Part shown: in pieces, positions 5,325 to 47,395 of the stretch
Numbering within the stretch: position 1 is the stretch's first letter
Layout: each line of letters begins with the position of its first letter
Assembly: GCF_006345805.1 (NCBI RefSeq)
Contig: NW_021832868.1
Coordinates: 28,793-92,792 of the forward strand
DNA: 64,000 nt
From: Octopus sinensis
Lineage: Eukaryota
Direction: 5' to 3'
The notes under the pieces: model-generated
What the model saw: the letters and a program-made list of their open reading frames with translations, nothing else
Told to the model about the DNA's origin: nothing
Databases searched by the model: none
Translations under genes and position numbers: made by a program

Positions 5325-5408
5325 CTTGCGAGCAGATTTTGCAGACAACTGTTTCCTTGGTACTTTTGCACCAGTAGATTTTCGAGCCGTTTGTTTTGTT
5401 CTAGCCAT
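3590..5408 (-). CDS. LINE A1 ORF1 (gag-like nucleic-acid chaperone) initiating at a histone H3 ATG; ~606 aa in consensus
   Basis: CFRCQGFGHISTKC, CLICGGEHGRKTC, CVNCGKLGH knuckles. Two 1-nt C-run deletions (near 5100 and 4920) are intact in copy A2, giving one frame from MARTKQ to EEPI*. Confidence 0.85.
5325..5408 (-). other. H3: Histone H3 5' segment (codons 1-28) fused to LINE A
   Basis: MARTKQTARKSTGAKVPRKQLSAKSARK; H3 homology stops after K27. Confidence 0.95.
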
Positions 5409-5431
5409 ATTTTTTTTTTATTTCAGACAGG

Positions 5432-9800: not shown

Positions 9801-10390
9801 AGTTGGATGTAGATAAGTCTCTACAGGCTTATATACAGTCAGCCCTTTCCTGACGTTTAGTCAGCAAGAGGCGCTAGACTGCACCTTCTCGAAGGTCTAC
9901 AGTGCCAGAGAAGAAAAGGAAGAAAAAGAGGAGGTGCGTGGAGTGCCACCTTCTGCTCACTTCGAAGGCTCTGGACTTAGTAAAATTACTTAGTTTCTTT
10001 TTTTAATAAAGCTAGTTAGTATATTTATGAAATTGCTAATTTTTATCTGGTTAATTTGTAAGGAATATCAATGTATTTTATTAAAAAAATTATGTATAAT
10101 TTATCCACCAAATCCGTAAATTGTCCTACCTTGACGTTTCAAGGCATTAACAACGTCCATTGCGATAACAGTTTTTCTTTTGGCATGCTCAGTGTAAGAA
10201 ATACAATCACGAACAGTTTGCTCAATAAAAATCTTAAGGACAGAACGTGTCTCCTCGTAAATTTTTCCAGAAATTCTTCGAACACCCCCTCTTCGACATA
10301 GTCTTCTTATTGCTGGCTTAGTAATTCCTTGTATATTGTCAATTAATATCTTTCGAAATCGTTTTGCACCACTCTTTCCTCCTTTGCCCC
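9720..10390. repeat. Inverted segmental duplicate of ~19040-19790 (H4 + 3' flank + RTE remnant)
   Basis: Near-identical reverse complement. Confidence 0.9.
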
Positions 10391-10406
10391 TTACCACGTC
10401 CAGACT
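10101..10406 (-). CDS. H4: Histone H4 (start codon damaged, CCTAATGTCT > CCTAGTCT, plus small indels)
   Basis: [48 protein letters not shown]. Confidence 0.9.
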
Positions 10407-14464: not shown

Positions 14465-14469
14465 GTTTA

Positions 14470-14820
14470 AAAACAGTTTAGAAAAAAAATATAACAAAAA
14501 TAATTAAAATTTGGTAGAAATTGATCATTTTAGATTTTAGGGCGCTAAAATACAAGATCGCCGAATCCGGGAACAAATAAATAAAAGTTTGCCATAAGAA
14601 TATAAAGAATAGAACTTTCTATCAAAAAATAAGGTAAAATTCAATGAATAAAGATAAATGAGAATATTTCAAATAAGCGATATAAACAAATTGAAAGAAT
14701 AAACTCGCAAATATTACACAAATGAAATTTCAGATAATTTATTAATTAAAAGAAACTACATCGCAAAATATTCCTTCTAATCCAAATAAATAAAAAAATA
14801 AAGATTGACCAAATAATGGC
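14470..14820 (-). repeat. Dispersed AT-rich repeat of unknown origin (also ~28897-29330 and ~38694-39225)
   Basis: Shared blocks such as ATTATTTGGTCAATCTTTATTTTTT and GGATTAGAAGGAATATTTTGCGATGTAG. Confidence 0.8.
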
Positions 14821-18928: not shown

Positions 18929-19018
18929 GGTCCTTTTTTGCATCAGTCGAAAAAAATTTGGCAATGATACTTTTTTTGCATAGGTTGAAAATAGTGTTTA
19001 TTTAGAGAATTTTTCCTA

Positions 19019-19326
19019 ATGTCTGGACGTGGTAAAGGTGGCAAAGGAGGAAAGAGTGGTGCAAAACGATTTCGAAAGATATTAATTGACAATATACAGG
19101 AATTACTAAGCCAGCAATAAGAAGACTATGTCGAAGAGGGGGTGTTCGAAAAATTTCTGGAAAAATTTACGAGGAGACACGTTCTGTCCTTAAGATTTTT
19201 ATTGAGCAAACTGTTCGTGATTGTATTTCTTACACTGAGCATGCCAAAAGAAAAACTGTTATCGCAATGGACGTTGTTAATGCCTTGAAACGTCAAGGTA
19301 GGACAATTTACGGATTTGGTGGATAA
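19019..19326 (+). CDS. H4: Histone H4 (102 aa after repairing a 1-nt deletion near 19098), with half of its promoter at 18929-19018
   Basis: Complete [24 protein letters not shown] sequence; AATAAA just downstream. Confidence 0.92.
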
Positions 19327-20014
19327 ATTATACATAATTTTTTTAATAAAATACATTGATATTCCTTACAAATTAACCAGATAAAAATTAGCAATTTCAT
19401 AAATATACTAACTAGCTTTATTAAAAAAAGAAACTAAGTAATTTTACTAAGTCCAGAGCCTTCGAAGTGAGCAGAAGGTGGCACTCCACGCACCTCCTCT
19501 TTTTCTTCCTTTTCTTCTCTGGCACTGTAGACCTTCGAGAAGGTGCAGTCTAGCGCCTCTTGCTGACTAAACGTCAGGAAAGGGCTGACTGTATATAAGC
19601 CTGTAGAGACTTATCTACATCCAACTGTCTTAAGTACCGCTTGTGGTATTTGGTGACCAGTTCATCCCATGTCATCACACACAGTTCTTGAAAGGGATCT
19701 CAAACTTCATGGCAAAAGTTTCAAAAACTGGGACGACCTAAAATCTTTGCGGGATTTCGCCCGCAACAGAGGGGCATGGACGAGCAAGGAACAGAAGATT
19801 GTTTTGCTTGTGACACGTGTCGGATTATAACTTTGTTAATGTTCCTACGGAATGTATTATAATAATAATTTCCTCATGACATTAACTAATTTATAACTTT
19901 CCGTTTACTTATTGTTTTATTTATTAAGAAATATTTTAATTATCTACTATTACAAATTATCCTCTCAAAAAATTCGGAATGCTACTTTTAAAAAAATTTT
20001 GGAAATAAAAAAAA

Positions 20015-23000
20015 ATGGCTAGAACAAAACAAACGGCTCGAAATCTACTGGTGCAAAAGTACCAAGGAAACAGTTGTCTGCAAAATCTGCTCGCAAGCTG
20101 TCTGCACTAAGAAGACTATGCAGAAGTGGAGGCGTTCCCGCTTCGCACTCCCCGGAGGACAAGACGGTTCAGTGTGCCACTACGATGAACTGCCGGAGCC
20201 GTGGTTCACCGCCACGTGCTTCCGGCTATTATGTGGTGTTTAATTCTTTAGGTCAAAGCAGGAGGTCGAAGCCTGGACCCTCCCAGATGGGTTCAGCACT
20301 CACTGAAGACTCTTCTCCCTCTGCTCCCCCTTTGGCTGGTGTCGGGGGAGCAGCAGCTGCAACAGGTACTAATTGTTTGGTAGCACGACAACCGCACAGC
20401 ATGCTGGTTCGCCACGTGTTTGCGGTTTGTCTAGTGGTGCCAAACCCAGCCTAGGTAAGTCAATTAATGCCAACAGGGTGTCGTCTCCTGAGGCCGTCCC
20501 GGTGGGTACGGCAGGAAATAAGGTTGCCCTTGAGGACGGTTGGTACACGGTGGGGAAACCCAAACGTGCGGCTGGCCGTCCAACCCCCCCTAATGTTTTA
20601 GGTACTGGGTGTGTGTCCGATCAGGTGGATGCACACCCAAAGAAGACCACTGGCGCCGGGGGCAGAATTACCTTCGGTGCTGTGGCACGACTTGAGGTCC
20701 TCCCTACAAGTGGGAAGGCCTCGGTCATAAAGATCTTAGGTACGTTAGACTCTATCCAGCCTTCAAAGCTGTATAGAGTCCTGAAGAGGGAGCCCACCCA
20801 ATTCCTGCTTGGGTGGGAGAAGGAGGAGGACTTCTTCAGCTTTAAAGGAGAGCTGGAGAACAGCCCGTTCGGTCCTGGCATGCATCGGCTTGTCAGGATT
20901 GAACAAAGGTAAGGCAGGTAAGAGTCCTGCTCCTCGGGGTCCCCCGGGACTTCGAGGATAATGACCTTTTAGGACACATACAGCGGGAGTACCCCAGTGC
21001 CTCTGCCCTTGCACGCTTCAAGCAGGGTAACCGCCCTCTTGAAGTGGTGGAGGTCATCCTGGGATCTCCTGCGGAAGCCGAGCGCCTAGTACTTCTGGTA
21101 CTAGGATCGGCTACATTAGGATGAGAGCTGCCTGGCCCCGCCCGAAAGCCACCCAATGCTTTCGGTGTCAGGGGTTCGGGCACATCTCCACAAAGTGCCC
21201 GGATAAGGCGAAGTGCCTTATTTGCGGTGGGGAGCATGGTCGCAAGACGTGCCCCTCACCATCCAAGGAGAGGCAGTGTGTCAACTGTGGTAAGTTGGGA
21301 CACACTGCCAACTTCAGAGGTTGCCCCAAGTTCAAGGAGGCAACCCGAAAGGTAGGTGGGGATGTAATCCCAACAGTAAGTCGCCCGCGTCGCGTCGCGC
21401 GCCCTGCGCCAAAACCTGGCAAGCAGGCGATACTGGCCAAACCTTCCAAATCCGTTGGGTGGCGAAGACAGTGGAACCGTGAGCCATGCTACGTGTGGGT
21501 CGGTGCAGCCTTCGCCGACAAAGTTGGCAAAGCAGGTGAAAGCTTCCGAGTCCGCTTGGTTGCCTAAGCCGGCAATGCCTTCTGAGGCGGCTAACGGCGG
21601 CGCCGTCCGGCACACCTGGGGCTGAAAAGGCGTCCTCCATACGTGGAGATGCCATTGCACTCAGCCCCTGGCGAGCGTGTACCGCAGGACAGTATTAGTC
21701 CTGCGGTGCAATTATGCGTTTCCCTATTAAAATTTTGTAGGGAGATGAATTGCAGTGTAGAGGAAATGCTACACTGCAACGTTGCCGAGGCCAAGAAGAT
21801 CCTTGGCGAAGAACCGATATGATGCTCAACATCATATCGGTGAACGCGCGTTCCTTGGAAGGAAAAAGGGACGCCGTTCAGAGGATGTTGGCCACCACGA
21901 GTGCGGACATTCTGGTGGTCAACGAAACGAAGGTAAAGGGGGGTCCGTACGTAGTTGATGGCTACAACTGTCGTCACATACCCTGGAAACAGGGGTCAAT
22001 ATGTGGCACAGGAACTAGCCTCTTCTACAAGCCCTACCTTGCCTTGCAGAGTCCAGGTATATGTTCATGTAGCTTGTGTGAATTCCTCCAAGTGAGAATT
22101 CGCATAGGCGAGTTAACATTTTACCTAGGTGGGATGTACTCGAAGAACTTTACGGCGTGCTCCTGGCACGTACGGGAGTTCTTTGAAAAGCATCCGAAGG
22201 CCATGGTTGTTGGGGACCTGAATGCCAAGCATCAAGATCTTGGTTTCAGGGTAACCAACTCGCATGGTTTGGCTCTGAAGCGCTGGTTGAAGACCTCGGG
22301 CTGGAAATCCGGACTTCGAGCGAGCCAAACCACGTCGACGAGGGGGAGGGGACGTGACTGGCTAGGGCTTGCTCTGGTCAGTCCCGGTCTTCTAAATTGG
22401 GTTAGTAAAACTATTTTATTGTCCGATATTGGGAGCGACCATCTGCCTCTATTGCACGAACTCCGTGAGCCAGTTCCTCAAAGGGTCCCAGGATACTTTG
22501 ACCTCCGGGTGGGTTCCTGGGCTAACCTGGAGAGTTTCATGGCCAGCAGGTTGCCCTCACTTCTGGTGGGGAATACCTGCGCCAACATACGTGAGTTGGA
22601 GGCGCTTGATAATGGAATCAATGCTGCCCTGACTGATTACATGCGAGATAATTTCAAACAAACTCAGTGCAGGGTCAGGCACATTCCACGCTCCCTCACC
22701 GGATCTTAAATAAAATTAGGTTCAAGCGCCGGCTATCCAGACTACGGGACAAATGCGTTTACGAGGAGAACCGTGTTTGGTTTCGTGGCTGGATTAGCCG
22801 GCTTCAGAGGGAGATCCGAAGAGAAATCCGCGAACTCGAAAGTTCGCGGTGGGAGAGGGCCTGCCGAAGGGTGGACCCTCGCTTTCCGGACTTCTGGAAG
22901 CAGTTGAAGAGCCTGTCGGGGAGAAGGGGGGCTAAGTCAGTGCGCCTTAAACGCTCTGATGGAACCCTCGCTTCGGACCCGGTTGAGGTGGTTGAAATAC

Positions 23001-24554
23001 TTTCAGCCCATCTCAATGGCATCTCGGGAACTGACGGAAGTCAGTTCGTAGAGACATCGTCCTTTGATACTGTCCAGCAGATATTGTCGTGGGACAAGCG
23101 CTGCCAGCTGGGCATATCAAGGAACGATGCATGCAGGCGAAATTACTGAAGCGGAGATTCTGGCAGCAATCTCCCGAAGTAAGAACACCGCGGCGGGTTT
23201 GGATCGGATCCCGATGGCCATCTTTAAGAAGGCCCCGCCGCGGTTAATCACTGCACTAAAGGTTTTATTTAACGGGAGCTTGCGACTTGGGATGATTCCC
23301 TCCAGGTGGAAAGTGGCTGAGGTAATCCTTATCGGAAAGCCCGGGAAGCCACATGATGTCCCCGGGGGATATAGGCCCATTTCCTTGCTCCCCGCAATAT
23401 CTAAAATCCTAGAAAGAATTATGCACCAAAGGCTCCTGGAGGAGCTGATGGTTGCAGACGCCCTCCCTGAGTTCCAATGGGGCTTCAGGGAGGGCCGCTC
23501 ATGCGGGGACTGCCTTCACAAGGTGTCGTCTGGTATGAAGAACGCCCTCCAGAAAAGGGAATGCGGTATTTTAGTTAGTCTCGACATTGAAAAGGCCTTT
23601 GACTCGGTGTGGCACGACGGCCTCCGGAGTTCCCTTGCCACGTGTGGGGTTTCTCCGTGTCTAAGGCGCTGGCTGTCGGGTTTCTTGAATCTCGCAGGCA
23701 GGTCGTGCGGCATCAGGGGGTCTTTTCTAAAGTCGCAACAGTCCTTCGCGGGGTCCCTCAGGGCTCTGTGCTCAGTCCGACACTATTCAATGTGTTTATG
23801 GCCACTGCGCCTATGCCAGTCAATGCTCGTACTGAAATGGTAATCTATGCAGACGACATTATCCTCTGGGATCACTCAATGAAACCGGAGTGTGCGTGTC
23901 GTAGGCTTCAGGTTGCTGTGGATGGACTTGCAAACTGGTGTGGGAGTAGGGGTCTGAGAATGTGCGCGGACAAGTGCAGTGTCCTTAAAGTCTGTAAAAG
24001 GACGAGGGGTTACACTAATTTTGTTCCTAGGTTATTGCTGAGCGGGTCAGCAATCGCTGCAGTTGATCGGATGACTTATTTGGGCGTGCTCTTTAAGCCG
24101 TCCGGTAAGTTTGATGATCACATTGCACGTACGAAAATGCGTGCAATGCAGCGATTAGGTGCGTTGCGTGCTTTCCGCTTGAGCAGAGGTGCCTGGTTCC
24201 GCGTGTTTAACGCCATGGTGTTACCCGTCTTGACCTATGGCGTCCACGCTTGGTACCTCTATGAGGACAGGGATAAGCATGTTGACGTGCTTAAAAAAGT
24301 AAGAAGACGAGCCATAAGGCTAGCCTATGGCTTAGGATTCCGGACTGAGCTCTCCGACGCCCAGGAATCATCTCTCAAAGGCCTCTCTGAGGTCCTAGAG
24401 AAGATTATTTCTGGATGGCAGGTAAGGCGGTAAGTCTTAACCTGTGGTTGTGTGTAGGGAGGCGTGTGTGAGATGGAGACTGAAAAGGCAGCGATGCCGA
24501 AGGTCTACTTAGTTAGTTTTTAACTCCCTTAACTTATAATGTTTTTTTTTCCCC
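20015..24554 (+). mobile_element. LINE family A, copy A2, starting at H3 ATG (H3 codons 1-28 at 20015-20097; ORF1 to 21822; ORF2 21819-24433)
   Basis: Near-identical to A1 in opposite orientation, with many 1-nt indels. CGGAAT histone-type motif at 19975 upstream. Confidence 0.95.
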
Positions 24555-27500
24555 CACCAATTTGGACAATTTGGACACACGTCCAATTTGGACACACGTC
24601 CCATAAGTGCACCGAAAAAGTTCGTTGCTTGGTCTGTGGTGGCGAACACCGACACAATAGGTGTCCGAACTCAGACCCCAGACCAAATGACCCTGCTGTC
24701 AAGACCTGCATAAACTGCAACAGTCCTGGACACTGGGCATGTTACGGTGGATGCCCACTCGCCAAAGCCGCGTCTGCAGCCTTACGGGCTGTGAGAAATC
24801 CGCCGGCCAGCAACCCAGCTCGCTGGGTGAAAGCCGAACGCACAGAGTCGATCTGGACAAAGAGGCCAGTTGTGAATCCGATCAAGACTGATGTCTGCAT
24901 TCAGACATCGGCGGACTCCGACTTTGATTTTAAACTCGACCCGAAGCCGACGGCTGACTCTTGTTCCAGTACCAGAGCTGGCCGCACGGCTGCTGCTCGC
25001 AAGAAGACAAACACCCCTCCAGACAATATCTCATCGCAAAGAGGTGCCCTCTCGGACGAAGACCTGCACAACAGAGACTCCCTTATGGAATTCTTTCATC
25101 GTTGTGTGGGAGCTCTAACCAAACTTGGTGTGGAACCTGAGGTGCTGCAACGGCTCCTATTAGAGGGGAGCACGCCAGCAAAATAGCCCCAGTCAAAATC
25201 ATCGCTGTGAATGCCCGATCTATCAAGAGACGGCACCAGGACTTCGTTGAGATGGTAAACAGCGGCCATCCAGACATTATTGTCGTCAACGAGTCTAAGC
25301 TCAAAGAAAACCACTCGTACGAACTTCCGGGCTACCGGTCAGTGGACCTAAAATGGGGAAGCTGCTCTACGCCAGGGACTGGCTCGAGCATCTTCTACGC
25401 CGAAAACCTCCAAATCCGTAACCTCACCATCATCGAGAGCACGGTGTGCGAATTCCTCTCTCTTGAGGTGAAAACTGATTCCTTCTGGATAAAGGTCGGT
25501 GGAATATATTGCAAATATCTCCCCCCCTGCATCAGATTGATTGACGAATTCTTCTCAAGCACAGCTCATTGCTTCTTATCGGAGACTTAAACTCGAAGCA
25601 CACGGCGTTTGGATGTCGGTTAACCAACCAAGATGGTCGAACACTGAAGAAGGTCACTGACAAGCTTGGTATTTTCGTCAGGACATCCGAAGACCCGAAC
25701 CACCACTCGCCCTTTGGCGGGGACAACCTGTGCCTGTGCATCTGTTCTCACTCTGTCGCTAACCTTATGGAAAAGCCTACAGTCCTTGACGATATCGGAA
25801 GTGACCACCTACCAATGGAGATCAAAATTCACACTAGCATTGTTAGACAAGAACACATTTCCTCTCACTACAATCTCTCAAAGATCAACTGGCCACACTA
25901 CAGGAGCTCCATAAGTGCATTCCTGCATGACAACGGTCGCCCTGTTGGGTATAACTCAGCCCTCGACATCGACTCCGCAAGCGATAAGCTAAGCAAATTC
26001 ATGCTTCAGTATCTAACGTCGTACGGAGAATTGTCAAGTGCAGACCGCGCACGGAGGACCACTCTGAGCGTGAAAGTGAAGATCATCCTCAACGAAAGGA
26101 AGCGGCTGAGAAATAAACTCAAACGCTGTGTGGACCCAGCTGACAGGGGAAGACTTAGGAACATGATCTCGGAAATTGGTTATAAGGTCCACGTCGCGAC
26201 AAAGCTGGAAGCAGCCAGGAAATGGCAGAAGGCTTGTCAAAACCGACTACAGAAACCCAAATTTCTGGGACTGTTTCCACAAAGTGGCTAACCTCGAAGG
26301 AAAATCCTCACCCCGAGGTTGTGCAACCAGTCTGGTATGCCCGCCTCGCCACAAGAGATGCCAACATATTTGCAGAACACCTGGCCACTATCCAGGAGGC
26401 CAATCCGGAAACGTCGCAAAACCGGGAGTCGGAGCCACTGCCGCGCCCACTGTCGCCGGACCATCACCCGATCACCATTGCAGAGGTGACCTGGGCCATC
26501 CGTTCGTCAAAAGGCAACGCACCGGGCCATGACAAAATACCGATGCGATTGTTTAAGGAAGCACCCGAAGACCTACATGTGTTCCTCGCGGATCTGTTTA
26601 CGGCAAGTCTCAAATGGGGCCATGTGCCGGAAAAATGGAAAATCTCAGAGGTCCGGATGATCAAAAAGCCTGCGAAACCGGTGAATCTCGCTAGCAGCTA
26701 CCGTCCCATAAGCCTAATCCCAACTATCTCAAGGCTGATGGAGAAAATTATGGCCAAGCGCCTCGACTTCCACGCCGAAGAGAAGAAAGTGCTGCTCCCG
26801 CAGCAATGGGGTTTTCGCTCTGGACGTAGCTGCGGTGACTGTTTCATTACGGTACAGTCCACCATCTCGAGAGCAACGGAGTTTAAAGAAACTTTATCTC
26901 TTGTATGTCTGGACATCTCAAAGGCTTTTGACAGCGTCTGGCACAGAGACCTCCTGGAAAGGATCGAACTCTGTGAGCCAACAGCGGAAGTCTTCCTCTG
27001 GATGCGCTGCTTCCTCTCAAATCGCTACTCTTTTATCTCTGAGTCGGGCTTCTTCTCAAGATATATTTCGCTCCGAAGGGGGGTTCCGCAGGGGTCCTGT
27101 CTCAGCCCAATCTTTTTCAATTTGGTAATGAGCAGTTTCCCCACACCCTCCGATCCCAGGACATCCCTACTCCTCTACGCGGACGATGTTCTCGTTCTGG
27201 ACACCTCGATGGACACCAATGCCTCGGAGAAACGACTTGCCGGCTACATTGAGGAGATAAAGAATTGGTGCATTGGTAAGCGACTCTCGCTGGCCATGGA
27301 CAAATCTGCATATCTCCAAATTAACCCAAGAAAGTCGCAAGATCGCAAACCCGGCTCTTTGGTGGAAATTGCTCGCCCTGAGAGCATACGTTACCTGGGG
27401 CTCACAATCGACGCAAACTCGAGATACCATTTGCATTTCAAACGGAGAAAAGGGAAAGCCATCGCCGCTCTCCGACTCCTAAGAAGCATGCACTTGAATA

Positions 27501-27945: not shown

Positions 27946-28310
27946 ATTGGCACCTAAAGTTAGCACAAAAGGACAAAAAAGAGCTCCCATTAAAACAAAA
28001 AAATGTTTCCGTCGCTACAAAGAAAAAAAAGAAAAGGAAAACTTTTTCGATATATCTTATGAAAATTTTAAAGACAGTACATAATCAACTTGGGATGTCA
28101 AAGAGGCTATGATGGCTATGGACAGTTTACATTCGATGTTTATGACAAAATAAAAACCGAGGCTTCAAATTTAGTCTATCAGAATTCGAAGGCTACCATT
28201 ACCTCACGTGAAATACAGACTGCAGTTCGTCTGATTCTTCGGGTGAATTGGCAAAACATGCTATTACAGAAGGGTGCAAGGCAGTTACTAAGTACACAAA
28301 TACAAAATAA
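27946..28310 (+). CDS. H2B: Histone H2B, divergent, with several indels (pseudogene or error-prone copy)
   Basis: (M)[60 protein letters not shown]. Confidence 0.88.
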
Positions 28311-28891: not shown

Positions 28892-30126
28892 CTTTGCCAT
28901 CATTGAGATATCCTTTCTGGTATTTACACTGTTTATAAGCTACTAGGTAGAATTGTGTTTTAATTAAAATTATCTTGATTCTTAGTTACCCAATTATTAA
29001 TAGAAAACATAATAAATTGTGGCACGTGTGAGCACTCTTTTTGACCAACCTTGTTGTCCTGTTGCATTATTTGGTCAATCTTTATTTTTTAATTTAATTG
29101 GATTAGAAGGAATATTTTGCGATGTAGTTTCTTTTAATTAATAAATTGTCTGAAATTTCATCATTTTGTAATATTTGCAAGTTTATTCTTTCAATCTGTT
29201 TATTCCACTTATTTTGACATCTGCTTTATCTTTATTTATTGAATTCTACGTTTTTTTTTTGATAGAAAGTTTTATTTTATATATTCTTATAGCAGATTTT
29301 TATTTTTTTAAATTTTGAAAATATTCTTTTATTTTAAAATTGAATGATAATTTGTGACATGGGTTCCTGTTCATTTCTCTTCTTTAACATATTTTATCCG
29401 TTAAATAAAGTTGATTGATTTACCTCGTCTCGATTATTTGATAAAATGTTAATTATTTCAGCGGCCTGATAGAATGGAGATTCGAATTTATCCAATCACA
29501 ACGAAGGGTTTGTTTCATAGTCTTTTTAACTCGAACCTATCTATAATTTTTTTATCTAAACTTATTTCCGACACTAAATTCGTATTTACTATTCTGTCAT
29601 TTATTTTCCTATTCATTGCCTTATAGTAGGCTAAGTTTCCATCAATCGGATTTAAATTTGAATTTTTTGGAATTGGACAATTATTATAGCACTATCGGAA
29701 AAACAAAATTTGGCTAAGGTTGTCGTCAATTATGGTTGTCGCCAATTATGAGTGTGCTCGCTCTACGGAATGGGATTTATAAACAAAATATTAAAACAGC
29801 AATACATAAGAAATTATTTCAAGTACAATGGGCCTTGTTTATCACTTGGTAGTTTTGTAACTCCTCCTTTGTCATCTCTCTCGATCAACCGTGGAGGTCG
29901 ACAACAAAATTGGTATAGAAAGTGTGATCATTGATGTAATGCTCGAACCTCTCATAATAACTATTGAATACTGCAGTGATCTAATAAATATAAACGTTCA
30001 GATCAAATTACTTGAAAAAATTCTTTTAAATTCAGGATGGTCAATGAAATGGCGATAATCAGAATCATATGGATTTATGATTGTTTTGTATTATTATTAT
30101 TTGCAACATACGTAGAATCATATTAG

Positions 30127-32407: not shown

Positions 32408-34605
32408 TTAAGAATCCAGATCGTCAGTGATTTCTCTTCTTCGTTTGGAAGAAGAGTTTGCAACAAAATTCTCATCATTTTCCATTTCTGCGTCAAAGTA
32501 ATTGTTCAACTGAGTGTCCTCACGACATGCCAGCTCCGCAAGTTGATTGGCGGCAGAGGCGTACTCCTCGTTGTCTACCTTCATCCCATGTCTGTGTTCA
32601 ATAAGCATACTCTCTAGAGTCCTCTTCAGCACAACCGACTGGATGTATGTCCTCGTTCCTTCTTCAATGGATAACTTGTCCATATGACTTTTAAAGAACT
32701 TTGAGACAACTCCATCCCATGTCAAGACAATTGGAATAATCTTCACTTTTGCTTCATAGAGAACTGACAGTTCGTTTGCAAGCAGGTCATATTTGTGAAA
32801 TTTCTCCACTTCAACTTGCTTTAAACGGTCTTGCGAGGTAACTCCCACTTCGATTAAATGAATTTCTCTTTTCCTCTTGTCATAAACGAAGATATCAGGT
32901 TTATTGAATTGAACCTTTGTTTCAGTCATAATTGAAGTGTCAACTCTGATTTCGACATTTTGGGTCGACATTGTTGACACGACTGAATGTCCTTTCAATT
33001 TCCTGCTTCGTTTTATTCCATACATTCGACACAAGTGGAGATGAATACACTTTACCACTTCGTTGTGTCTTCGGAGATAATCACTGTTTAGCATCCTACC
33101 ACACCGCGTGGCTAGATGGTCAACAGTCTGCCTGCTTTTTTTGAAGTGGACGCATAGTGATCCCGTGTATGCAAAGAACAAATTCCTATCTTGCAAAAGA
33201 CAGTACAATGCTTCGCTTCGTGGACCATTGTTCCCTTTCGATAGCCATTGCGAAGAAGTAGATATGTCGACATCTGATTCCTCCATACATTTGAACATCA
33301 CCGAGTGTAGTGATTTACTGTTAATTCGGTTAAGCAAGAGTTTCCTTTGTGCGTCCTTCAGTAACTCAATGGTCAGATTTTCCCTGCCGACAGCTGCATA
33401 TTTGGAGACAAGAAATTCTGCGATTGTGGCTAAGTGCCATTTTTTTCCTTTTATTACTCGCAGAATACCCGACCTCCGCAGACAGGTAGTCGACTGTTTT
33501 TCCAAACTTTTAAGAAACTGGAAGAGCATTAATTCGCTTTTGAAAGAAATTGAGGCAAGTCCTCTTCCAATGGTCTTGCGGTCCAAATACAACCTCTCCT
33601 TATTTGCAGGCTGGAGGTGTAACTTGAGAGTCGTAAGTAATCGGCGTATTTGTTGGTCAATCTCATCAAATTCGTAAGGTTCGATATTGATTAGCCCAAT
33701 ATAATAATTATATAGGGATAATGCATATTCATTGATTCCACGAAACAAATTTACAGCATTCAGGTTTGTTTTTGACAACATAGTTATCCTCTTCTTGACA
33801 TTCTCCAATATGGAGTCCATAACTTTATTCTTGAGAACATTACTTCCGCCATCTTCAAGTACACCCAAGTAGCGATATCCGTTGATTCCATCGACAGTCT
33901 CACAGCATGATAAAGATTCCACATTAGATGCTGATTTTTCGGAATTCATCTCTAGGCCGACACTTTCAAAAAATCCATTAACAGCCTCCATCATTTTGAC
34001 TAACACATCTTCTTTGAGGGCAACTATTTTCAGATCGTCAATAAAGAAGAAATGATTGGTGGAGTATGTCAAAATATTGGGATCTTCCCGACTAATTTCG
34101 AGTTTGGGAAACATGGAGTTAAGCATCCTGCTTAGGGGATCCATCGCCATAACGAATAGCAGCGGGGACAATGAATCTCCTTGGAGTATTCCCCGGCTTA
34201 ACTTTACTTTCCCAATTCTTTTCCCATCGATATGTAAGTTTACTGTCCACTTCTTGACTATATTCTTTACAAAGCTGACAATCCAATGTGGTATTCCAGA
34301 GCAATCCAATACGTGGAACAAGAACTCGTGATCAACTGAGTCAAATGCCTTCTTCACATCGACCCAAGCAGAATAGAGGCCATTTCCATACTCCTTATTT
34401 AAGCATTGGTTAATGAGGGCTTGCTCTTTGGCGCCTTGACATTGCTTCCTCGTCCAAAGCTGATTATCTGAGATTAAGCCAAATGCCTCGATGAAATCGG
34501 CCAGTTTGGCATTAACACATTTGGTGACAAGTTTATACAAAGTTGGCATACACGTTATAGGGCGTAAGTCCTTCGGGGTCTCACACTCACTTTTTTTAGG
34601 AAATC
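32408..34605 (-). mobile_element. 5'-truncated RLE-type non-LTR retrotransposon (R4/NeSL-like), RT + restriction-like endonuclease
   Basis: [64 protein letters not shown]. Confidence 0.9.
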
Positions 34606-38541: not shown

Positions 38542-39269
38542 AAATTGATTTGTATAGATTTTTTGTTAAAAAAATTTGGCACGTGGAAATTTCAGAAATA
38601 CAATCTCCTTGCAAATTAATTGTCGATTCTCTATGAAACAGAAATAAATATTATTATCGCAGTCTTTATTTCAGATATCTGGACCATCATTGAGATATCC
38701 GCTCTGGTATTTACACTGCTTATAAGCTACTAGGTGAAATTGTGTTTTAATTAAAATTATCTTAATTTTTAGTTACCCAATTATTAATAGAAAACATAAT
38801 AAATTGTGGCACGTGTGAGCACACTTTTGACATACCTTGTTGTCCTGTTACATTATTTGGTCAATCTTTATTTTTTTATTTAATTGGATTAGAAGGAATA
38901 TTTTGCGATGTAGTTTCTTTTAATGAATAAATTATCTGAAATTTCATCATTTTGTAATATTTGCGAGTTTATTCTTTCAATCTGTTTATATCGCTTATTT
39001 GAAATCTTCTCATTTATCTTTGTTCATTGAATTTCATCTTATTTTTTGATAGAAAGTTCTTTTATTTATATTCTTATGGCAAACTTTTATTTATTTGTTC
39101 CTGGATTTGGCGATCCTATATTTTAGCGTCCTAAAATCTAAAATGATCAATTTCTACCAAATTTTAATCATTATTGTTATATTTTTTAAACTTTTTTTTT
39201 TTTTTCTAAACTATTTTAGTATTTACAGTCAAATTAATTAAAAGAGAATTAATGTCGTGAACTTGAGGG

Positions 39270-39701
39270 TTAGTCCGACGACGATGCACTGCGGATAGAG
39301 AGGCAGTTCCCGCGAAGAATTGCAACCGAGATGCGCTGGAAAAGCCAGCTCGTCTCCCTCCGGTCATTTGTATTCTGTGAGATTCTTCCTCCCACAACCC
39401 GTAACAGATTTTCTACCTTCTTTCCAACCACACCGGAGGTCTCAAAGGCTAGGGGGACAAACTCAACGACGTTCGGAAGCACAGCGTACTTCGTCAACTT
39501 CCTTTCTTCTGCCAGCGCACATGCGTAGCCTGGTGTACTGGCTGTTCCTGTGAGCACAGTATCTGAAAAGGAGTCGACGCAAGTTACATCCCAAACAAGA
39601 GACCTTCCTCCTCTAAAGGGGAATATAGTCATCCCGTCAGGACGCTTTCCGTCACTGCGGCCGATCTCAAATGGGAAAAGGGTCATCCCGTCAACTTCCA
39701 A
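39270..39701 (-). mobile_element. CRE-like RLE non-LTR 3' fragment
   Basis: DGKRPDGMT..GRSLVWDVTCVD..AEERKLTKY..PLAFETSG..FQRISVAILRGN. Confidence 0.85.
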
Positions 39702-39719: not shown

Positions 39720-39800
39720 GTATTACTCAACAAAATTTCGGAATGATACTTTTCGATTACTCAACAAATCAACAAAATTTCGGAATGATACTTTTTGGAT
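39720..39800 (+). promoter_or_regulatory. Duplicated histone-promoter motif forming the left flank of LINE C2
   Basis: AAAATTTCGGAATGATACTTTT twice (CGGAAT at 39739 and 39781). Confidence 0.65.
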
Positions 39801-42800
39801 TACTGGCCGGCGGGTTTTTCACAGCCCGTAAGGCTGCTTACGCGGCTTTGGCGAATGGGCATCCACCCTAACATGCCCAGTGTCCAGGACTGTTGCAGTT
39901 TATGCAGGTCTTGACAGCAGGGTCGTTAGGTCTGGGGTCTGAGTTCGGACAGCTCTTGTGTCGGTGTTCGCCTCCACAGAGCAAGCAACGAACTTTTTCG
40001 GTGCACTTATGGGACGTGTGCCCAAATTGGTGACACCGGAAGCATCTGACAGCCGGGGGCTTGTGCCATTTACATCGGATATGGCTGAAACCCGCAGTAA
40101 TCCCGAAGCGGATGAGGGTGTTGGCCTCAGCTCGGGAGTCCAGCGTAAGCTTTCCGACTGGAATGTCGGTTCCATTCCGAGAGTATCTCTCGAACTTGAA
40201 GTCCGAATCGAGAGTTTCCCGGAGGTGGAGGTCAAGGTCGTTAGTCGACATCCAACGGGGGATTCCCTTTAGGATCAGGACGGAAGCTTTCTCAGGTATT
40301 GAAGCAAGTTTGTGGCCGCCTTCGCCAAACAATTTAGTATGAGTTAACTCCGCCTTGAATGCGGCTGCATCCTCGGCGCACCGGAATTGTAGTAGGAAAG
40401 ACCCGGACTTCTGTAGAGTAATCCGAGCTTTCGACGCATTTGGGGATTTTGACAGGAGATTAAACCTCTTGATTTTCCCCAGTGCTGGGTTGTCAATCGT
40501 GAGGGTAAACAACAGGCTCGAGTTATCGCACTCCATCGCCAACTGAGGAGGCTCCTCGTCACTGAGTTTTCCTCCAGTAGATTCGCGAGCTCTTTGTTTG
40601 ATTGCGGTGTCAGTTTGTTTCTCTTTAATAACTTTGGATTAGTTTTTTTTTAATAACTTTGTTTCAATTTGTTTCTCTTTGATAACTTTAGGTGCCATCT
40701 GTTTTTCTTTAATAACTTTGTTTCAAAATTCAGGCTCTTTTTTGTCCTGGTTTCTCTGACCAGGACCTGCACAACAGAGATGCCCTTATGGAATTCTTTC
40801 GTCGTTGTGTGGGAGCTCTAACCAAACTTGGTGTGGAACCTGAGATGCTGCAACGGCTCCTATTAGAGGGGAGCACGCCAGCAACATAGCCCCAGTCAAA
40901 ATCATCGCTGTGAATGCCCGATCTGTCAAGAGACGGCACCAGGACTTTGTTGAGATGGTAAACAGCGGCCATCCAGACATTATTGTCGTCAACGAGTCTA
41001 AGCTCAAAGAAAACCACTCGTACGAACTTCCGGGCTACCGGTCAGTGGATCTAAAATGGGGAAGCTGCTCTACGCCAGGGACTGGCTCGAGCATCTTCTA
41101 CGCTGAAAAACTCCAAGTCCGTAACCTCACCATCATCGAGAGCACGGTGTGTGAATTCCTCTCTCTTGAGGTGAAAACTGATTCCTTCTGGATAAAGGTC
41201 GGTGGAATATATTGCAAATATCTCCCCCCCTGCATCAGATTGATTGACGAATTCTTTTCAAGCACAGCTCATTGCTTTCTTATCGGAGACTTAAACTCGA
41301 AGCACACGGCGTTTGGATGTCGGTTAACCAACCAAGATAATCGAACACTGAAGAAGTACACTGACAAGCTTGGTGTTTTCGTCAGAACATCCGAAGACCC
41401 GAACCACCACTCGCCCTTTGGCGGGGACAACCTGTGCCTGTGCATCTGTTCTCACTCTGTCGGTAACCTTATGGAAAAGCCTACAATGCTTGACGATATC
41501 GGAAGTGACCACCTACCAATGGAGATCAAAATTCACACTAGCATTGTTAGACAAGAACGCATTTTCTCTCACTACAATCTCTCAAAGATCAACTGGCCAC
41601 ACTACAGGAGCTCCACAAGTGCATTCCTGCACGACAACGGTCGCTCTGTTGGGTATAACTCAGCCCTCGACATCGACTCCGTAAGCGATAAGTTAAGCAA
41701 ATTCATGCTTCAGTATCTAACGTCGTACGGAGAATTGCCAAGTGCAGACCGCGCACGGAGGACCACTCCGAGCGTGAAAGTGAAGATCATCCTCAACGAA
41801 AGGAAGCGGCTGAGAAATAAACTCAAACGCTGTGTGGACCCAGCTGACAGGGGAAGACTTAGGAACATAATCTCGGAAATTGGTTATAAGGTCCACGTCG
41901 CGACAAAGCTGGAAGCAGCCAGGAAATGGCAGAAGGTTTGTCAAAACCTGGACTACAGAAACCCAAATTTCTGGGACTGTTTCCACAAAGTGGCTACCTC
42001 GAAGGAAAATCCTCACCCCCGAGGTTGTGCAACCAGTCTGGTATGCCCGCCTCGCCACAAGAGATGCCAAACATATTCGCAGAACACCTGGCCACTATCC
42101 AGGAGGCCAATCCGGAAACGTCGCAAAACCGGGAGTCGGAGCCACTGCCGCGCCGACTGTCGTCGGACCATCACCCGATCACCATTGCAGAGGTGACCTG
42201 GGCCATCCGTTCGTCAAAAGGCAACGCATTGGGCCATGACAAAATAGCGATGCGATTGTTTAAGGAAGCACCCGAAGACCTACATGTGTTCTTCGCGGAT
42301 TTGTTTACGGCAAGTCTCAAGTGGGGCCATGTGCCGGGAAAATGGAAAATCTCAGAGGTCCGGATGATCAAAAAGCCTACGAAACCGGTGAATCTCGCTA
42401 GCAGCTACCGTCCCATAAGCCTAATCCCAACTATCTCAATGCTGATGGAGAAAATTATGGCCAAGCGCCTCGACTTCCACGCCGAAGAGAAGAAAGTACT
42501 TCTCCCGCAGCAATGGGGTTTTCGCTCTGGACGTAGCTGCGGTGACTGTTTCATTATGGTACAGTCCACCATCTCGAGAGCAATGGAGTTTAAAGAAACT
42601 TTATCTCTTGTATGTCTGGACATCTCAAAAGCTTTTGACAGCGTCTGGCACAGAGACCTACTGGAAAGGATCGAACTCTGTGAGCCAACAGCGGAAGTCT
42701 TTTTCTGGATGCGCTGCTTCCTCTCAAATCGTTACTCTTTTATCTCTGAGTCGGGCTTCTTCTCAAGATATATTTCGCTCCGAAGGGGGGTTCCGCAGGG

Positions 42801-43630
42801 GTCCTGTCTCAGCCCAATCTTTTTCAATTTGGTAATGAGCAGTTTCCCCACACCCTCCGATCCCAGGACATCCCTACTCCTCTACGCGGACGATGTTCTC
42901 GTTCTGGACACCTCGATGGACACCAATGCCTCGGAGAAACGACTTGCCGGCTACATTGAGGAGATAAAGAATTGGTGCATTGGTAAGCGACTCTCGCTGG
43001 CCATGGACAAATCTGCATATCTCAAAATCAACCCAAGAAAGTCGCAAGATCGCAAACCCGGCTCTTTGATGGAAATCGCTCGCCCTGAGAGCATACGTTA
43101 CCTGGGGCTTACAATCGACGCAAACTCGAGATACCATTTGCATTTCAAACGGAGAAAAGGGAAAGCCATCGCCGCTTTCCGACTCCTAAGAAGCATGCAC
43201 TTGAATCCAAATACCTTCCTATTTGTATACCATGCAACAATCTTGCCCAGCCTACTGTATGGTATGGAAGCTTGGTTCTACTCGAAACAATATTAGAAAA
43301 TTCTGCGAAAATGCGAAAAAATACGGAGATACGCTCTAAAACTAGCCTATATGCTAAATCCATGGGACCCTGTCCCAAGCTGGGCGGAGAGCAAGTCTCC
43401 AGAGCTACGGCAGGCCATCGAGGATTCTATCCGAACTTTTCGGAAACGTTCTAAAGTGGCTGACCTATTCATCGATCGTGGAGAATAGCAGGTGTCCCTG
43501 CTCATAGACAGACAAAGCGGACGAACCATGGAAGAGCTCGAATGCCCAAAGCAATCGTCTCGTCAAAATTATTTTCCGCACTAAGCTTCTGTCTCGCTCT
43601 TCTTTCTTACAATAAAATTCTTCATTCATT
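39797..43630 (+). mobile_element. LINE family C, copy C2, with inverted 5' segment (39797-40748, minus) and direct 3' segment (~40749-43630); ORF2 has a premature stop at 43294
   Basis: ORF1 N-terminal two-thirds on minus; ORF1 end and ORF2 on plus; ends AATAAAATTCTTC(ATTC)2. Confidence 0.92.
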
Positions 43631-43644
43631 CAACTTGCAAAAGG

Positions 43645-43920
43645 AGCTCTTGCAGCATATTCATATCCACTCCAAGTTGACTTCGCGCTTGTGAGAGTGC
43701 TGGGGGTCGGCAACGTCTAAATAGAGACATCGACTTTGGACGGACTTGGGGGAGACCCTTTTGTCCAGACTGATTCTATCGGTTCGGCTTTTACCCAGCG
43801 TACTGGGCTTTTAGTCTGTGGGCTCTTCGCAACCCTTGAGGCTGCTGTTGCTGCTTTGGCAGACGGACATCCACCGTAGCACGCCAAGTGCCCAATGTTC
43901 TTGCAGTTGCAAAAGTGATT
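43645..43920 (-). pseudogene. Divergent family-C-like ORF1 fragment
   Basis: NCKNIGHLACYGGCPSAKAA..RWVKAE aligns with C1 NCNSPGHWACYGGCPLAKAA..RWVKAE. Confidence 0.75.
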
Positions 43921-44895
43921 GAACTTGCAAAAGGGTCTGTGTTCTCGAGCAAAGGTGCCAACCTCCATCTTAACATTCATGTTAAGAAGGATTGGCCCCC
44001 CGCTCATGTATATTTTCTGGTAGTTTGGGTTGTCCCAGTCCTCGTCCTAAGGTTGTGAGAATTCCCCGAGAGGAATTGTGCGAGGCTTTACCTCATCTCC
44101 TTCTTTCAATCCATGTACCTTCTCTATTTGTTCGTACTCATTTTCCCCAATCGAGTCTTTCACGAAATCAGCAATATTTTTCATATATGTTTACACAGTG
44201 ACTATGTAAGCTCAGTATGATTGTAGTATCTTTTTTTGTAATCAGCAAAATTTCATATGGTTCGATGTGTCAGAGAGTTCTCTTTGTCTCACAGATTCAG
44301 CATCTCCCGATAATAACTTATACGTTACACATATAATTTGGTTATCTCCTTGTGCGAGCATCTTCATCTTTATGTTTCTCCTTAATTGTGCCTTTTCTTT
44401 CTCTGTTAATTACAATTACAACTTGCAAAAGGATCACTCAACATTTGTCAAGAATCTCTCAGTTCCAAGATAGCCATATAAATTCTTAAGGGCATTCACT
44501 CCAATATTTTGGAAAGGCTCTCGGATGCTCGCTGAATCACGGTGTCGAAGCAGCTCTTGAGCCAGTTCCTGTTTCTGCTTGTTGGACATACCAAGATATC
44601 GACCCGCCATCATCAGGTTCTTAGCTGACCTGAAGGCACCGACCCCACGGCGTATGGATTGCTTGCCATCGTTGAGTATTTCAACAAAGGCATTGACAAG
44701 GTCGCTCACACGCACATCTAAGGTCCTCCACTCTCCATCGTCCTGCCTCCTCCAGATGGAAGGGAAAGCCATTATGTCGCGGTACGGGTCAGCTTCCATC
44801 TCCTTCAGTGGCTGTTAGTCTTGATGGAAAGCTGACCAGACCGTTGCATAACTTCCCTCAGCCTTAGCGATGTCCTTTCCCTTTTCCCATTTGAA

Positions 44896-47395
44896 GTTGG
44901 AACACTAAGTGTTCCAAAAACTGAGGTTTTGTCAAAAAAATTAATATCAATATAAATTTAATAATTTAATTAATGCAAAAAAGTCTTAAATATTATTATT
45001 TATTGAAAAATAGTCATCGATCCTTTTTCCATAACCATAATTTTTCTTCAAACTACTGAACAAATTTTGTCTGAAGCAGTAAAAATCATTTAACAAAATT
45101 GGAGCTATATCTAGAACTGATTCTTCCAATTCATTCACTTTTGCTACTACTTCTTTGACCGTAGTCTGTTTATTTTGCATACCACTGTAAAAAATTTCTT
45201 CATTATCGCTGCTTTCCGTATTTTCCAACACTTCGTCTACAACTTGTTCTATAACATCATCCGTCAGATTATCAGAAACAACAAATATTTCATTGCCGAA
45301 AGTATTATCCCAACAATTTGTAATTATTTCGGAGGATACATTTTGCCACGATTTCGATACTATTATCAATGATTGGCGTAAATTAATTTTTTTAAGTAAG
45401 TCGCAGTAAAAATCTTCTTCATCTATACAACAAATAAATTCAATTAACGCCTTCGAATAATTATCTTTAAAAGCTTTGATTATCCCATTATCCAATGGTT
45501 GGAGAATCGGAGTTGTATTTTTGGGTAAAAACAGCAATTCGATATTTGAGAGCGATTTATTTTCATGACACGAAGCGTTATCAAGAATTATTAAAATTTT
45601 TCTCTTTTCCATTTTAATTCGTTCATTCACTAAGAATAACCATTGAATAAAAATATCTCTTGTCATCCAGGCATTTTTGGAAGATGAGTACATAGCACCA
45701 TAATCCTCAGGGTTAAAATTTCTGAAACATCTGGGATTTTTAAATTTCCCGATTATTAAAGGATCAAATTTTTGACCTGAATAACTGCAGCAAAAGAGCA
45801 AAGAAATTTTTTCCTTATTTATTTTAGACCCTAACGCTTTTTTATTTTTTTGTACGAATGATTTTTTTGGGGTCTTTTTTATAAAAAGACAAGTTTCATC
45901 AATGTTAAAGATATTATTTTTTCCAAATTGATCAATTTTTTCATGGAAAACTTTTAAAAATGATTGAATTCCATCACGATTACATGAGTTTTTTTCGCCG
46001 CTAAGGATTTTGAATTTGAGTTCATGTCTTTTTTTAAAATTCATTAACCAACCATTCGATGTTTTAAAGCTTGTAATGTTCAATTTACCCGCAATTTTCA
46101 AACCTTAAAACAATGTGAGAAAAAGTAAAATTACCAATTTTTTTGATAAGAGGACCTGAAACTGGAATATTTTGGAGCCGTAATCTTTGACACATCTTAC
46201 CACATTAACCCAGTTTATAATGGAAGGTTTTGCAACTAGACCTCATCTCAAATCAATTGTATGCTCACTCGATCTTCAGAAGGCCTTTGATTCGGTCTCT
46301 AGAAAGATACTGACTCGAAAAATATTTGACCTATCGATCGACTCGAACATAAAACTCTGGCTTTCGAATTACCTCAGCGGAAGGAGAGGGCGTGTATGCC
46401 TGAATGGAATCAATTAAATCTCGAGATTACTTCCAAACGGAGTTCCCCAAGGCTCCCCCCTCTCTCCTGCTCTATTCAATTTATACCTATCCGACATTCC
46501 TAACCCTGAAATGGAAGACTCAATCTTTCTCGCCTACGCTGACACCTACTCATTGGATCACGTAACCAAGACCTCTCGAAAGCTTTCAAAAGAACACAAG
46601 ATCTCTTATTACAAATTCGAACTTGGCTATATCAAAACAGGATGAACATCTCCCCCGACAAATCGTCCAATACCCTATTTACGTCGGAAAAGAGACTTGG
46701 AAGCCTTACTATTGATCTTTTTCTGGACAACGAAAAGATCTCATTCACGAAGAACCCTAAAATTCTGGGGGTCATTTTTGACACCCACATGTGTTTTACT
46801 TCCCATTTAAAGAAGGCCATCGGATCCAGTCAGAGAAGGATTGGACTAATCAAATCGATTTTTGGTGAACTAAAGACACCGTTCCCGGCTCTCGGCACTC
46901 TCTACAAACAATTCATCGAACCAACAATTGGCTATGCCTGCGCCGCTTGGGGTTCTAATCTCTCATGGTCTAACCGCCTTAAAATTGAGACTACACTATG
47001 CCGAGCCGCGGCTAGCATAACGAAAATTTCCAAACTGAACAACATTACCCCAACTCCGCTTGACCAACTTATTAAGAAAGATGGAAAGGGTTTCTTAGCC
47101 ATCCAACAAGACCACCTGCCAAAAGACTCTAACAACCAGAAGCACATCACCCCAATTCAATTCCTCACAAAAACTGCTCCCCGCCCATCCCGCACTTGCG
47201 TTGGGTCCAGAGTCCAACATCGGGAAAAGCTGAGAAAGATTTTGAGGGTTGTTGGAATCACCTAATTAATTACCCTAATTAACTGTTGGTGATTCTTGGG
47301 TTAAAATAATAATAATAGGCAGAGATCCTACAAAGTGTTCCAAAAACTGAGGTGTTCCAGTTCCGAGGTATGTTCCAAATCGAGGTCGGACTGTA
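44896..47395 (-). mobile_element. pogo/Tigger DNA transposon (transposase ~46180-44986, 31-nt intron at 46104-46134), interrupted by a LINE
   Basis: NIPVSGPLI, SNGWLMNFKKRH, NIDET, ILDNASCH, LPKNTT.ILQPLD. One end reads TA|CAGTCCGACCTCG at ~47395, with repeated TGTTCCA..GAGG subterminal boxes. Confidence 0.85.
46187..47317 (+). mobile_element. 5'-truncated Jockey-like LINE RT fragment with (AAT)n tail
   Basis: LDLQKAFDSV, NGVPQGSPLSP, YAD, KNPKILGVIFD; AATAATAATA at ~47305-47317. Confidence 0.8.

Follow-up and report, generated by a model that had tools for sequence, protein, structure and literature searches.

The histone-gene cluster and its retrotransposons

The 64 kb of DNA analyzed here, referred to below as the window, is the last part of Octopus sinensis contig VCDQ01007429.1 (GCA_006345805.1) and comprises a decayed histone-gene cluster, in which fragments and pseudogenes of H2A, H2B, H3, and H4 are interleaved with many copies of non-long-terminal-repeat (non-LTR) retrotransposons bearing APE endonuclease and reverse-transcriptase (RT) domains. 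One of these copies, C2 (39804-43631), is the subject of this analysis. It is a decayed copy of a long interspersed nuclear element (LINE) of the histone cluster, an APE/RT element with a zinc-knuckle (CCHC) first open reading frame (ORF1), and its 5′ part is inverted such that 15 nucleotides (nt) identical to part of H2B lie at the junction with the remainder of the element. Within the window, C2 shares its family, C, with one further copy, C1 (24548-27924). The window also contains LINE family A (868-5424, minus strand, and 20002-24547, plus strand), its relatives families B and D, and a LINE of family F2 termed E (43642-44010, antisense).

The other O. sinensis loci compared are labeled L001, L002, L004, L005, L006, L007, and L009, and five histone-cluster regions of the same genome besides the window were located by means of an exact-protein match to the H2A of the window. 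The H2B copies compared number four, that of the window and three others from the same genome. The window copy is a plus-strand pseudogene (27947-28310) in which the start codon is mutated to TTG and frameshifts are present, and it contains both of the blocks that are matched in C2 (27948-27962 and 27970-27984).

C1, on the plus strand, serves as the comparison copy. It is 5′-truncated within the zinc-knuckle region of ORF1, and its 3′ end is situated about 21 nt upstream of the H2B start. Its 5′ junction (24548-24600) contains a duplication by stutter, caatttggacaatttggacacacgtccaatttggacacacgtcc, which suggests RT slippage or template jumping.

Structure of C2

Self-BLAST and pairwise alignment match C1 25050-27924 to C2 40753-43631 in direct orientation (97.2% identity), while in self-BLAST C1 24583-24817 matches C2 40030-39796 in inverted orientation (93.6%) and the intervening 232 bp of C1 (24818-25049) are without a counterpart in C2. 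The inversion and the loss of about 0.23 kb relative to C1, both reported in a preliminary description of this DNA, are thus borne out. Positions 40031-40752 of C2 comprise the upstream part of ORF1 and the leader, a region that is absent from the 5′-truncated C1.

On its left side C2 is flanked by distal repeat units of an H2B-type histone promoter (39730-39803, plus strand; AAAATTTCGGAATGATACTTTT..GATTACT), the same promoter being present in L007. The last 8 nt of this flank, GGATTACT (39796-39803, plus strand), are the presumed top-strand primer and are complementary to the C RNA at 7/9 positions. The inverted 5′ segment (39804-40748, minus strand) then runs from the ORF1 position that matches C1 24809 back through the ORF1 core (39868-40536, minus strand, with a stop mutation at 39868-70) to the leader and head. 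The ORF1 of C2 is 76% identical to O. sinensis LOC115231492. At the internal junction is GGTT (40749-40752), of which GGT could be either a 3-nt microhomology with the GGT of C1 at 25037-39 or filler. The direct 3′ segment (40753-43631, plus strand) carries the end of ORF1, ORF2 (APE endonuclease and RT, with frameshifts), the 3′ untranslated region (UTR), and a (TTCA)n tail, and is followed by a 10-nt remnant of the H2B 5′UTR, AACTTGCAAA (43632-43641, plus strand), at which the bottom strand would have been nicked.

The internal junction is spanned by the 8-bp inverted repeat that had been described at 40744-40766, its arms being GTCCTGGT (40744-40751) and ACCAGGAC (40759-40766) with a 7-nt spacer. 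The right arm is native ORF1 sequence, in which it encodes S-D-Q-D; GATCAGGAC occupies this position in the closest sister family. The possibility that this arm, which differs from C1 by 2 nt within one codon, was a product of the junction process was rejected on account of the native CAGGAC of that sister family.

The H2B 5′UTR remnant is abutted by an antisense C-terminal ORF1 fragment of LINE E (43642-44010, minus strand), which is 92% identical to L007 18514-18953. The fragment may mark another inversion junction, resembling that of twin priming, at the target site of C2; to the right of 43642-44010 no direct arm was found. A stretch of the C2 3′ flank, CAAAAGGAGCTC, had a resemblance to the GQKRAP of H2B, which was dismissed as coincidence, as the stretch, coming after the 10 nt of H2B 5′UTR, is the antisense ORF1 end of the other LINE (..LQELLL).

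Histone sequence in the head of C2

Read in the sense direction, the inverted arm begins with AACC, AGGACAAAAAAGAGC, and CTGAATT, and continues into an array of KVIKEKQ units that encloses ATGGCACCTAAAGTTA. The first of these histone matches, the 15-mer AGGACAAAAAAGAGC (40734-40748, minus strand), corresponds to H2B +24 to +38 and has the most 5′ position in the inverted arm, immediately beyond the tandem array. Its identity to H2B 27970-27984, noted previously, is exact, and the only exact copies in the window are these two (40748-40734, minus strand, and 27970-27984, plus strand); it is present in 3/3 of the other H2B copies. A second exact block of higher complexity, TGGCACCTAAAGTTA, equates 40697-40683 with H2B 27948-27962. 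At 40683-40698 (minus strand), ATGGCACCTAAAGTTA consists of the H2B start codon and codons 2-5 (M-A-P-K-V), matches the H2B copies with an intact start at 16/16 nt, and is in frame with ORF1. It lies 36 nt downstream of the 15-mer, and, read in the sense direction, the order of H2B is permuted in the C2 head, where +24 to +38 comes first and +1 to +16 follows at that distance.

The tandem array (40610-40726, minus strand) can be described as a 30-nt period repeated 3.7 times or a 59-nt period repeated 2.1 times and is derived from H2B +1 to +31, which the unit after the ATG, ATGGCACCTAAAGTTATCAAAGAGAAACAAA, matches at 26/31 positions. Its sub-blocks are 95-96% identical to each other and its copies have diverged by 4-26%, and therefore at least part of the array is older than the insertion. 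The last unit runs into an H3-like block in the N-terminal region of ORF1, GCTCGCGAATCTACTGGAGGAAAA (A-R-E-S-T-G-G-K; 40567-40590, minus strand), which matches H3 codons 7-14, at 28/33 nt with its context, and has no other matches than H3 N-termini. The H2B-like unit and the H3-like block are joined at a common GCTC. On the evidence of these matches, the head of C is assembled from sequence encoding histone tails.

Chance was evaluated with a Markov model of the A-rich head, and among 20,000 simulated heads 1.1% had an exact match of at least 15 nt to any histone 5′ region. Chance was rejected as the source of the H2B matches, because two blocks within the same 38 nt of H2B are well beyond what it would produce.

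Histone-derived heads in sister families

Comparable heads are found in related families. Family G, the ORF1 of which is 69% identical to that of C, is represented by three copies on three contigs with different flanks, and its heads (L004 7120-7500; L007 16540-16910, minus strand; L009 5115-5480) are identical in all three. In nucleotides the head consists of ATGGCACCTAAG, which is the H2B start, 35 nt, AGGACAAAAAAGAAC, H3 codons 13-23 (31/33), and H4 codons ~34-45 (29/33), and the corresponding protein begins with MAPKKNSKENAKANTEGQKRTKVPRKQLSTIRNLCRSG. The entire head is in one open frame with the ORF1 core. The leader of G is histone-like, and AGGACAAAAAAGAAC is a 14/15 version of the C2 15-mer that lies inside ORF1 and in frame with it. 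In both G and C2 the 15-mer, or its near-identical version, precedes a KV(P/I)(R/K)..KQ unit. As read from the protein, the G N-terminus is a mosaic of the H2B start, H2B GQKR, H3 KVPRKQLS, and H4 IRNLCRSG, the last of these occurring twice.

The head of family A is also present in three copies with different flanks (window 5325-5424, minus strand, and 20002-20100, plus strand; L005 18461-18561). It consists of H3 5′UTR and codons 1-28, identical at 84/84 nt to an intact H3 in L006, followed by an H4-like block (..LRRLCRSGGV, 28/34 nt). In L005 an open frame of 200 codons leads from it into ORF1, and the encoded ORF1 protein would therefore start with a genuine H3 tail. The ORF1 proteins of A and C are homologous, with 33% amino-acid identity. 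The family closest to C is F2 (77%), which has a single, more diverged unit, MVKNKQNLASIKA.. compared with KVIKEKQTDTAIKQ in C. Histone-derived heads are thus inherited within these families and reshuffled between them.

Several searches were made for further copies or transcripts of C. A search with the ORF1 protein yielded relatives of 76% and 50% and no full-length C copy, one with ORF2 at the overly strict cut-off of E ≤ 1e-60 gave no match, and exact-protein look-ups of the C ORFs and of the ORF of the A head were likewise negative. BLAST of the C2 head against six histone-cluster loci returned H2B genes only, and a scan of metagenomes for this head gave no match.

Insertion sites next to histone genes

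The 3′ ends of the LINEs cluster at a small number of fixed sites 12-90 nt ahead of histone start codons, several families having sites in common, and every 3′ junction beside a histone gene is in sense orientation (window 868, 10426, 14995, 24547, 27924, 34722, and 43631; L004 5929, 7087, 17207, and 18220; L006 4313, 8853, and 12520). The H4 site (^AATTTAGAGAATTTTTC) is occupied in five cases by two subfamilies, the A-type (L004, L006) and the B-type (window). C2, A-type elements (twice in L004), and a TTCCA-tailed LINE (L009) have all inserted at one H2B site (^AACTTGCAA), and LINE 3′ ends also abut a second H2B site (^GAACATACAAATTTTG). The H2A site is at position -12, and the H3 site (^CTGAAACTGT), at position -32, is occupied by two families. 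Independent insertions at the same target nucleotide are found at the H4, H2B, and H3 sites.

Within family C, 3/3 of the 3′ junctions (C1, the copy in L006, and C2) are about 21-27 nt upstream of the H2B ATG, and because C inserts upstream of the ATG, transcription that starts at the H2B promoter and passes through a typical C copy would yield an RNA with no H2B codons before the C sequence. In L007, the TATA-like box of an H2B-type promoter is followed after about 20-25 nt by the start of a full-length F2 copy. Use of histone promoters by these LINEs, as a general idea, is deduced from their sense orientation and insertion sites and finds good support there. In L001 and L002 there are related ORF1 copies with no histone genes visible in the flanks compared.

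Family A ends in ~15 nt (..ataatgtttttt and a C-run) that look like the native H2B promoter in its TATA region (..tatataatgtttttcccc), as seen at window 868-900 and 24520-24547 and at L007 2330-2400 (minus strand). This likeness may be coincidental, or the LINE 3′ end may provide the displaced histone gene with promoter-like sequence. Another candidate, attatataatgtttttt in L006, was considered as a remnant of an A-type 3′ end and rejected, as comparison with L007 identified it as the native H2B TATA region. A different arrangement is seen at L006 18488-19567, where two C-family fragments are head to head at 19334, with C1 positions 2809-3058 antisense beside 710-942 sense, and this is not of the twin-priming type.

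Origin of the inversion and of the junction sequence

Inversion of the 5′ part of a LINE with an internal deletion was reportedly explained for L1 by Ostertag and Kazazian in 2001 as the outcome of twin priming. The hallmarks of such events are two opposed fragments of one element, an internal deletion, bounding target-site duplications (TSDs), and microhomology of the top-strand end inside the RNA (PMC2837659). C2 has most of these. Its more 5′ part (39804-40748, antisense ORF1 and leader) is inverted relative to the rest (40753-43631, sense), 232 nt have been lost between the two, and at the outer junction the 3′ end of the target is complementary to the RNA over 7/9 bp, with the letters of the target at both mismatched bases. 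The preliminary description had noted a GATTACT microhomology with the histone-promoter repeat at this junction. No exact 7-mer is shared with the C RNA; what can be retained is that GGATTACT is target sequence, because it is present again in the promoter repeat (39757-39763), and the relatives of C have A(A/G)CCCAG in place of the AATCCA of C2.

The nick site is also of a regular kind. After the 3′ end of C2 comes AACTTGCAAA, which is the start of the 5′UTR in intact H2B (..ttcacttcaa|aacttgcaaattttgtggataATGG in L007). This position is where A-type copies in L004 and a further LINE in L009 also terminate, which makes it a regular site of nicking. That family C is a normal, TSD-making element of target-primed reverse transcription (TPRT) is shown by the C copy in L006, which lies at the equivalent H2B 5′UTR site with a clean TSD (GAACATACAAATTTT) spanning 15 bp or more.

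The explanation put forward here, at about even confidence, is that C2 is a twin-primed insertion and that the 15-mer at its junction is part of the element's own inherited, histone-derived head. TPRT would have begun at the usual nick site in the H2B 5′UTR (^AACTTGCAAA), and, during synthesis of the first cDNA, another 3′ end (..GGATTACT), located about 51 bp further upstream within the promoter, would have annealed over 7/9 positions to the ORF1 region of the C RNA and primed a second, antisense cDNA toward the 5′ end of the RNA. Once the two cDNAs were joined, 232 nt of ORF1 would have remained without a copy, and the stretch of promoter separating the two target ends would have been lost. 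On this view no copied part of the RNA lies further 5′ than the 15-mer at the inner junction, which would come from the histone-derived head of the element, the start of ORF1 in this clade apparently being built from pieces of histone 5′UTR and of sequence encoding N-terminal tails, in the case of C an H2B-derived array followed by an H3-derived block.

Several observations weigh against one part or the other of this explanation. With regard to twin priming, C2 is not bounded by TSDs, its left flank being the distal promoter repeat and its right flank 10 nt of H2B 5′UTR followed by another LINE, and about 51 bp of proximal promoter are missing in comparison with the intact paralogue in L007. 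The inverted arm also has 13 differences from C1 in 218 positions (6.0%), as against 2.8% in the direct arm, where windows of 226 nt contain a mean of 5.9 and a maximum of 10 differences, below the inverted arm. With regard to the 15-mer, it is outside the array and aligns poorly to the array units, and it is identical to present-day H2B at 15/15 positions while the adjoining units have diverged, such that it looks fresher than they do. It does not share the reading frame of the ORF1 downstream, and a TGA comes after it. Family F2 has a leader that is not histone-like, and no 15-mer. No full-length copy of C was found, and the heritability of the 15-mer in C is thus argued by analogy with G and A. 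The contrast in arm divergence, for which a Poisson probability of about 0.01 was estimated by the authors from one reference copy only, may mean that the two arms were copied from different RNAs. Although unproven, twin priming accompanied by deletion of target DNA, and possibly involving a second RNA molecule, explains the structure of C2 best, and the earlier proposal of twin priming is kept for the inversion, the internal deletion, and the complementarity at the outer junction, and qualified for the absence of TSDs and the missing promoter segment.

It had also been proposed that the H2B sequence in C2 is evidence for co-transcription of histone gene and LINE. The RNA region that was copied last does indeed hold H2B-derived sequence. 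A co-transcript, however, should be colinear with its source locus upstream, and only 15 nt are colinear here; the permuted H2B blocks, the insertion of C upstream of the ATG, and the inherited sister heads all argue against the stronger claim. No co-transcript is needed to account for the H2B sequence of C2, because the sister families hold histone heads as stable parts of ORF1. Most likely, the template RNA contained H2B-derived sequence as an inherited part, and not necessarily by read-through from an H2B gene.

In a second explanation, which appears unlikely, the C RNA would have ended at about CTGAATTTTG, and the RT, by a template switch, or a repair polymerase, as templated filler, would have copied 15 nt with either the abundant H2B mRNA or the gene itself, about 50 bp downstream of the insertion site, as template. 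Filler DNA is documented at twin-priming junctions (PMC2837659), and the position of the insertion in the H2B 5′UTR would have placed H2B +24 to +38 within about 60 bp of the break. Frequent switching of the RT onto histone RNAs is suggested by the mosaic H2B, H3, and H4 heads, which are joined at microhomologies (GCTC, AAAGTTA), and RT stutter at the C1 5′ junction points the same way. The 8-bp inverted repeat at the junction is also the kind of structure that snap-back or templated repair typically leaves, and by the authors' own estimate chance would supply one at fewer than about 1% of junctions, but its native right arm means that it is possibly incidental. Neither edge of the 15-mer shows clear microhomology, and copying at the junction would leave the parallel in family G unexplained.

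A third explanation, 5′ transduction, seems more doubtful. It calls for a source copy of C situated in H2B just after +38 and transcribed from the H2B promoter, whose RNA would have consisted of the H2B 5′UTR, +1 to +38, and then the C leader (CTGAATTTTG..), with the second cDNA reaching 15 nt into the H2B part. This would account for an exact H2B match that is bounded by the junction on one side and by a histone-like 35-nt leader with an ATG on the other, and for the apparently younger age of the 15-mer relative to the neighboring array units. Heads of the family A type (84/84) are the expected remains of such events, which are therefore plausible in the clade. The source copy is the difficulty: 3/3 of the C 3′ junctions are upstream of the H2B ATG and none is inside the gene, and a LINE at +38 was present in 0/4 of the H2B copies examined, in a search that covered about 170 kb. 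The match is moreover confined to 15 nt, the base preceding it is C where H2B has A, and a near-identical motif is internal to ORF1 in family G. If C copies were to start near CTGAATTTTGAAAC without the 15-mer, a heritable 15-mer would be disfavored and either filler or transduction favored.

Least probable, and indeed very unlikely, is an origin without twin priming, either by later DNA inversion and deletion of a normal C insertion or by two head-to-head C insertions with the 15-mer as the 5′ end of the first, for although the absence of a TSD, the different divergence of the arms from C1 (6.0% and 2.8%), and the heavy rearrangement of the region (the antisense ORF1 fragment at 43642 and the head-to-head C junction in L006 at 19334) are in keeping with it, a separate insertion would require a LINE fragment devoid of its 3′ end, which TPRT does not produce, the 7/9 complementarity is located exactly at the left junction, and the arms are adjacent parts of one element from which 232 nt only are missing.

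Comparison with known retrotransposons

Target-specific non-LTR elements that use a host promoter include R1 and R2 in ribosomal DNA, SLACS, CRE, and CZAR in spliced-leader genes, and Keno, Mutsu, and Utopia in small nuclear RNA and 5S genes. Like these, the octopus families insert at the same nucleotides of a tandem gene family, always in sense and at sites where the host promoter would drive the element. Unlike them, their targets are histone genes, at several sites and in all four core histones, host-derived coding sequence is fused to ORF1, and some related copies, such as that in L001, are outside histone clusters.

C2 itself resembles the twin-primed L1 in that its arms come from one element with a 232-nt internal deletion, there is microhomology between target and RNA, and the most 5′ copied base is at the inner junction. 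It differs from L1 in having a (TTCA)n tail and no poly(A) and in belonging to a cephalopod clade with a CCHC ORF1, and from twin-primed L1 in the absence of a TSD, the deletion of about 51 bp of target that is deduced from the comparison with L007, and the unequal divergence of its arms. The 5′ inversion is an ordinary by-product of LINE insertion, which in C2 exposes the 5′ end of a family for which no other full-length copy was found.

In U6/L1 chimeras, host RNA is joined to LINE copies by template switching or RNA ligation (PMC6789731). The octopus elements are similar to these chimeras and to L1 5′ transductions in having host RNA sequence at the LINE 5′ end with joints at short microhomologies (PMC6789731). 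In contrast to U6/L1 chimeras, however, the octopus pieces are short (15-110 nt), mosaic (H2B, H3, and H4), in frame with ORF1, and inherited in families and are not one-off dead chimeras.

Taken more broadly, and with rather less than even confidence, these families may form a clade of histone-array LINEs that insert in sense at the start or 5′UTR of H2A, H2B, H3, and H4 genes, are driven by the histone promoters, and have ORF1 proteins with genuine histone tails (H3 1-28 in A and an H2B-H3-H4 mosaic in G). Their heads would be renewed by 5′ transduction or template switching, and the 15-mer of C2 would be a snapshot of this process. The features that appear to be new are the histone-gene target, a captured host sequence that is coding, in frame with ORF1, and inherited, and an A ORF1 with its first 28 codons identical to the H3 of the cluster itself. 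Full-text literature searches, in which many journals are not covered, found no description of histone-targeting LINEs, and this is only weak evidence that such elements are new. As for function, the heads could be mimics of histone tails, or they could be the source of a histone-type 5′UTR and start codon for expression in S phase. If the proposal is correct, protein-coding, cell-cycle-regulated genes transcribed by RNA polymerase II join the known targets of site-specific retrotransposons, the heads represent a natural case of repeated host-exon capture at the LINE 5′ end, and mimicry of histone tails by a transposon protein becomes a testable possibility.

Other features of the cluster

The histones of the cluster are unusually divergent for an animal, with intact H3 76-79%, H4 77-80%, and H2A 59% identical to their human counterparts (window 535-855, 10104-10400, 19015-19323, and 27947-28310; L006 12053-12457). 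All of the H2B copies and many of the other histone copies have frameshifts or have lost their start codons, and the divergent histones may belong to a variant array or to a decaying one.

An AT-rich repeat of about 200-400 bp splits H3 after its first 6-22 codons at several places (window 28893-29309, 14469-14818, minus strand, and 38684-39198; L004 12640-12850, minus strand). In L004 the repeat has GT..AG ends and is intron-like (..AAACAAG|gttttaatt...ttttgcag|AAAAGTTCC). The window also holds remnants of other mobile elements. One of them, an ORF fragment at 39270-39701 (minus strand) upstream of C2, precedes the same promoter in L007 also. The others are an additional reverse-transcriptase ORF at 32408-34549 (minus strand) and a pogo/Tc5-type DDE transposase at 44986-46101 (minus strand).

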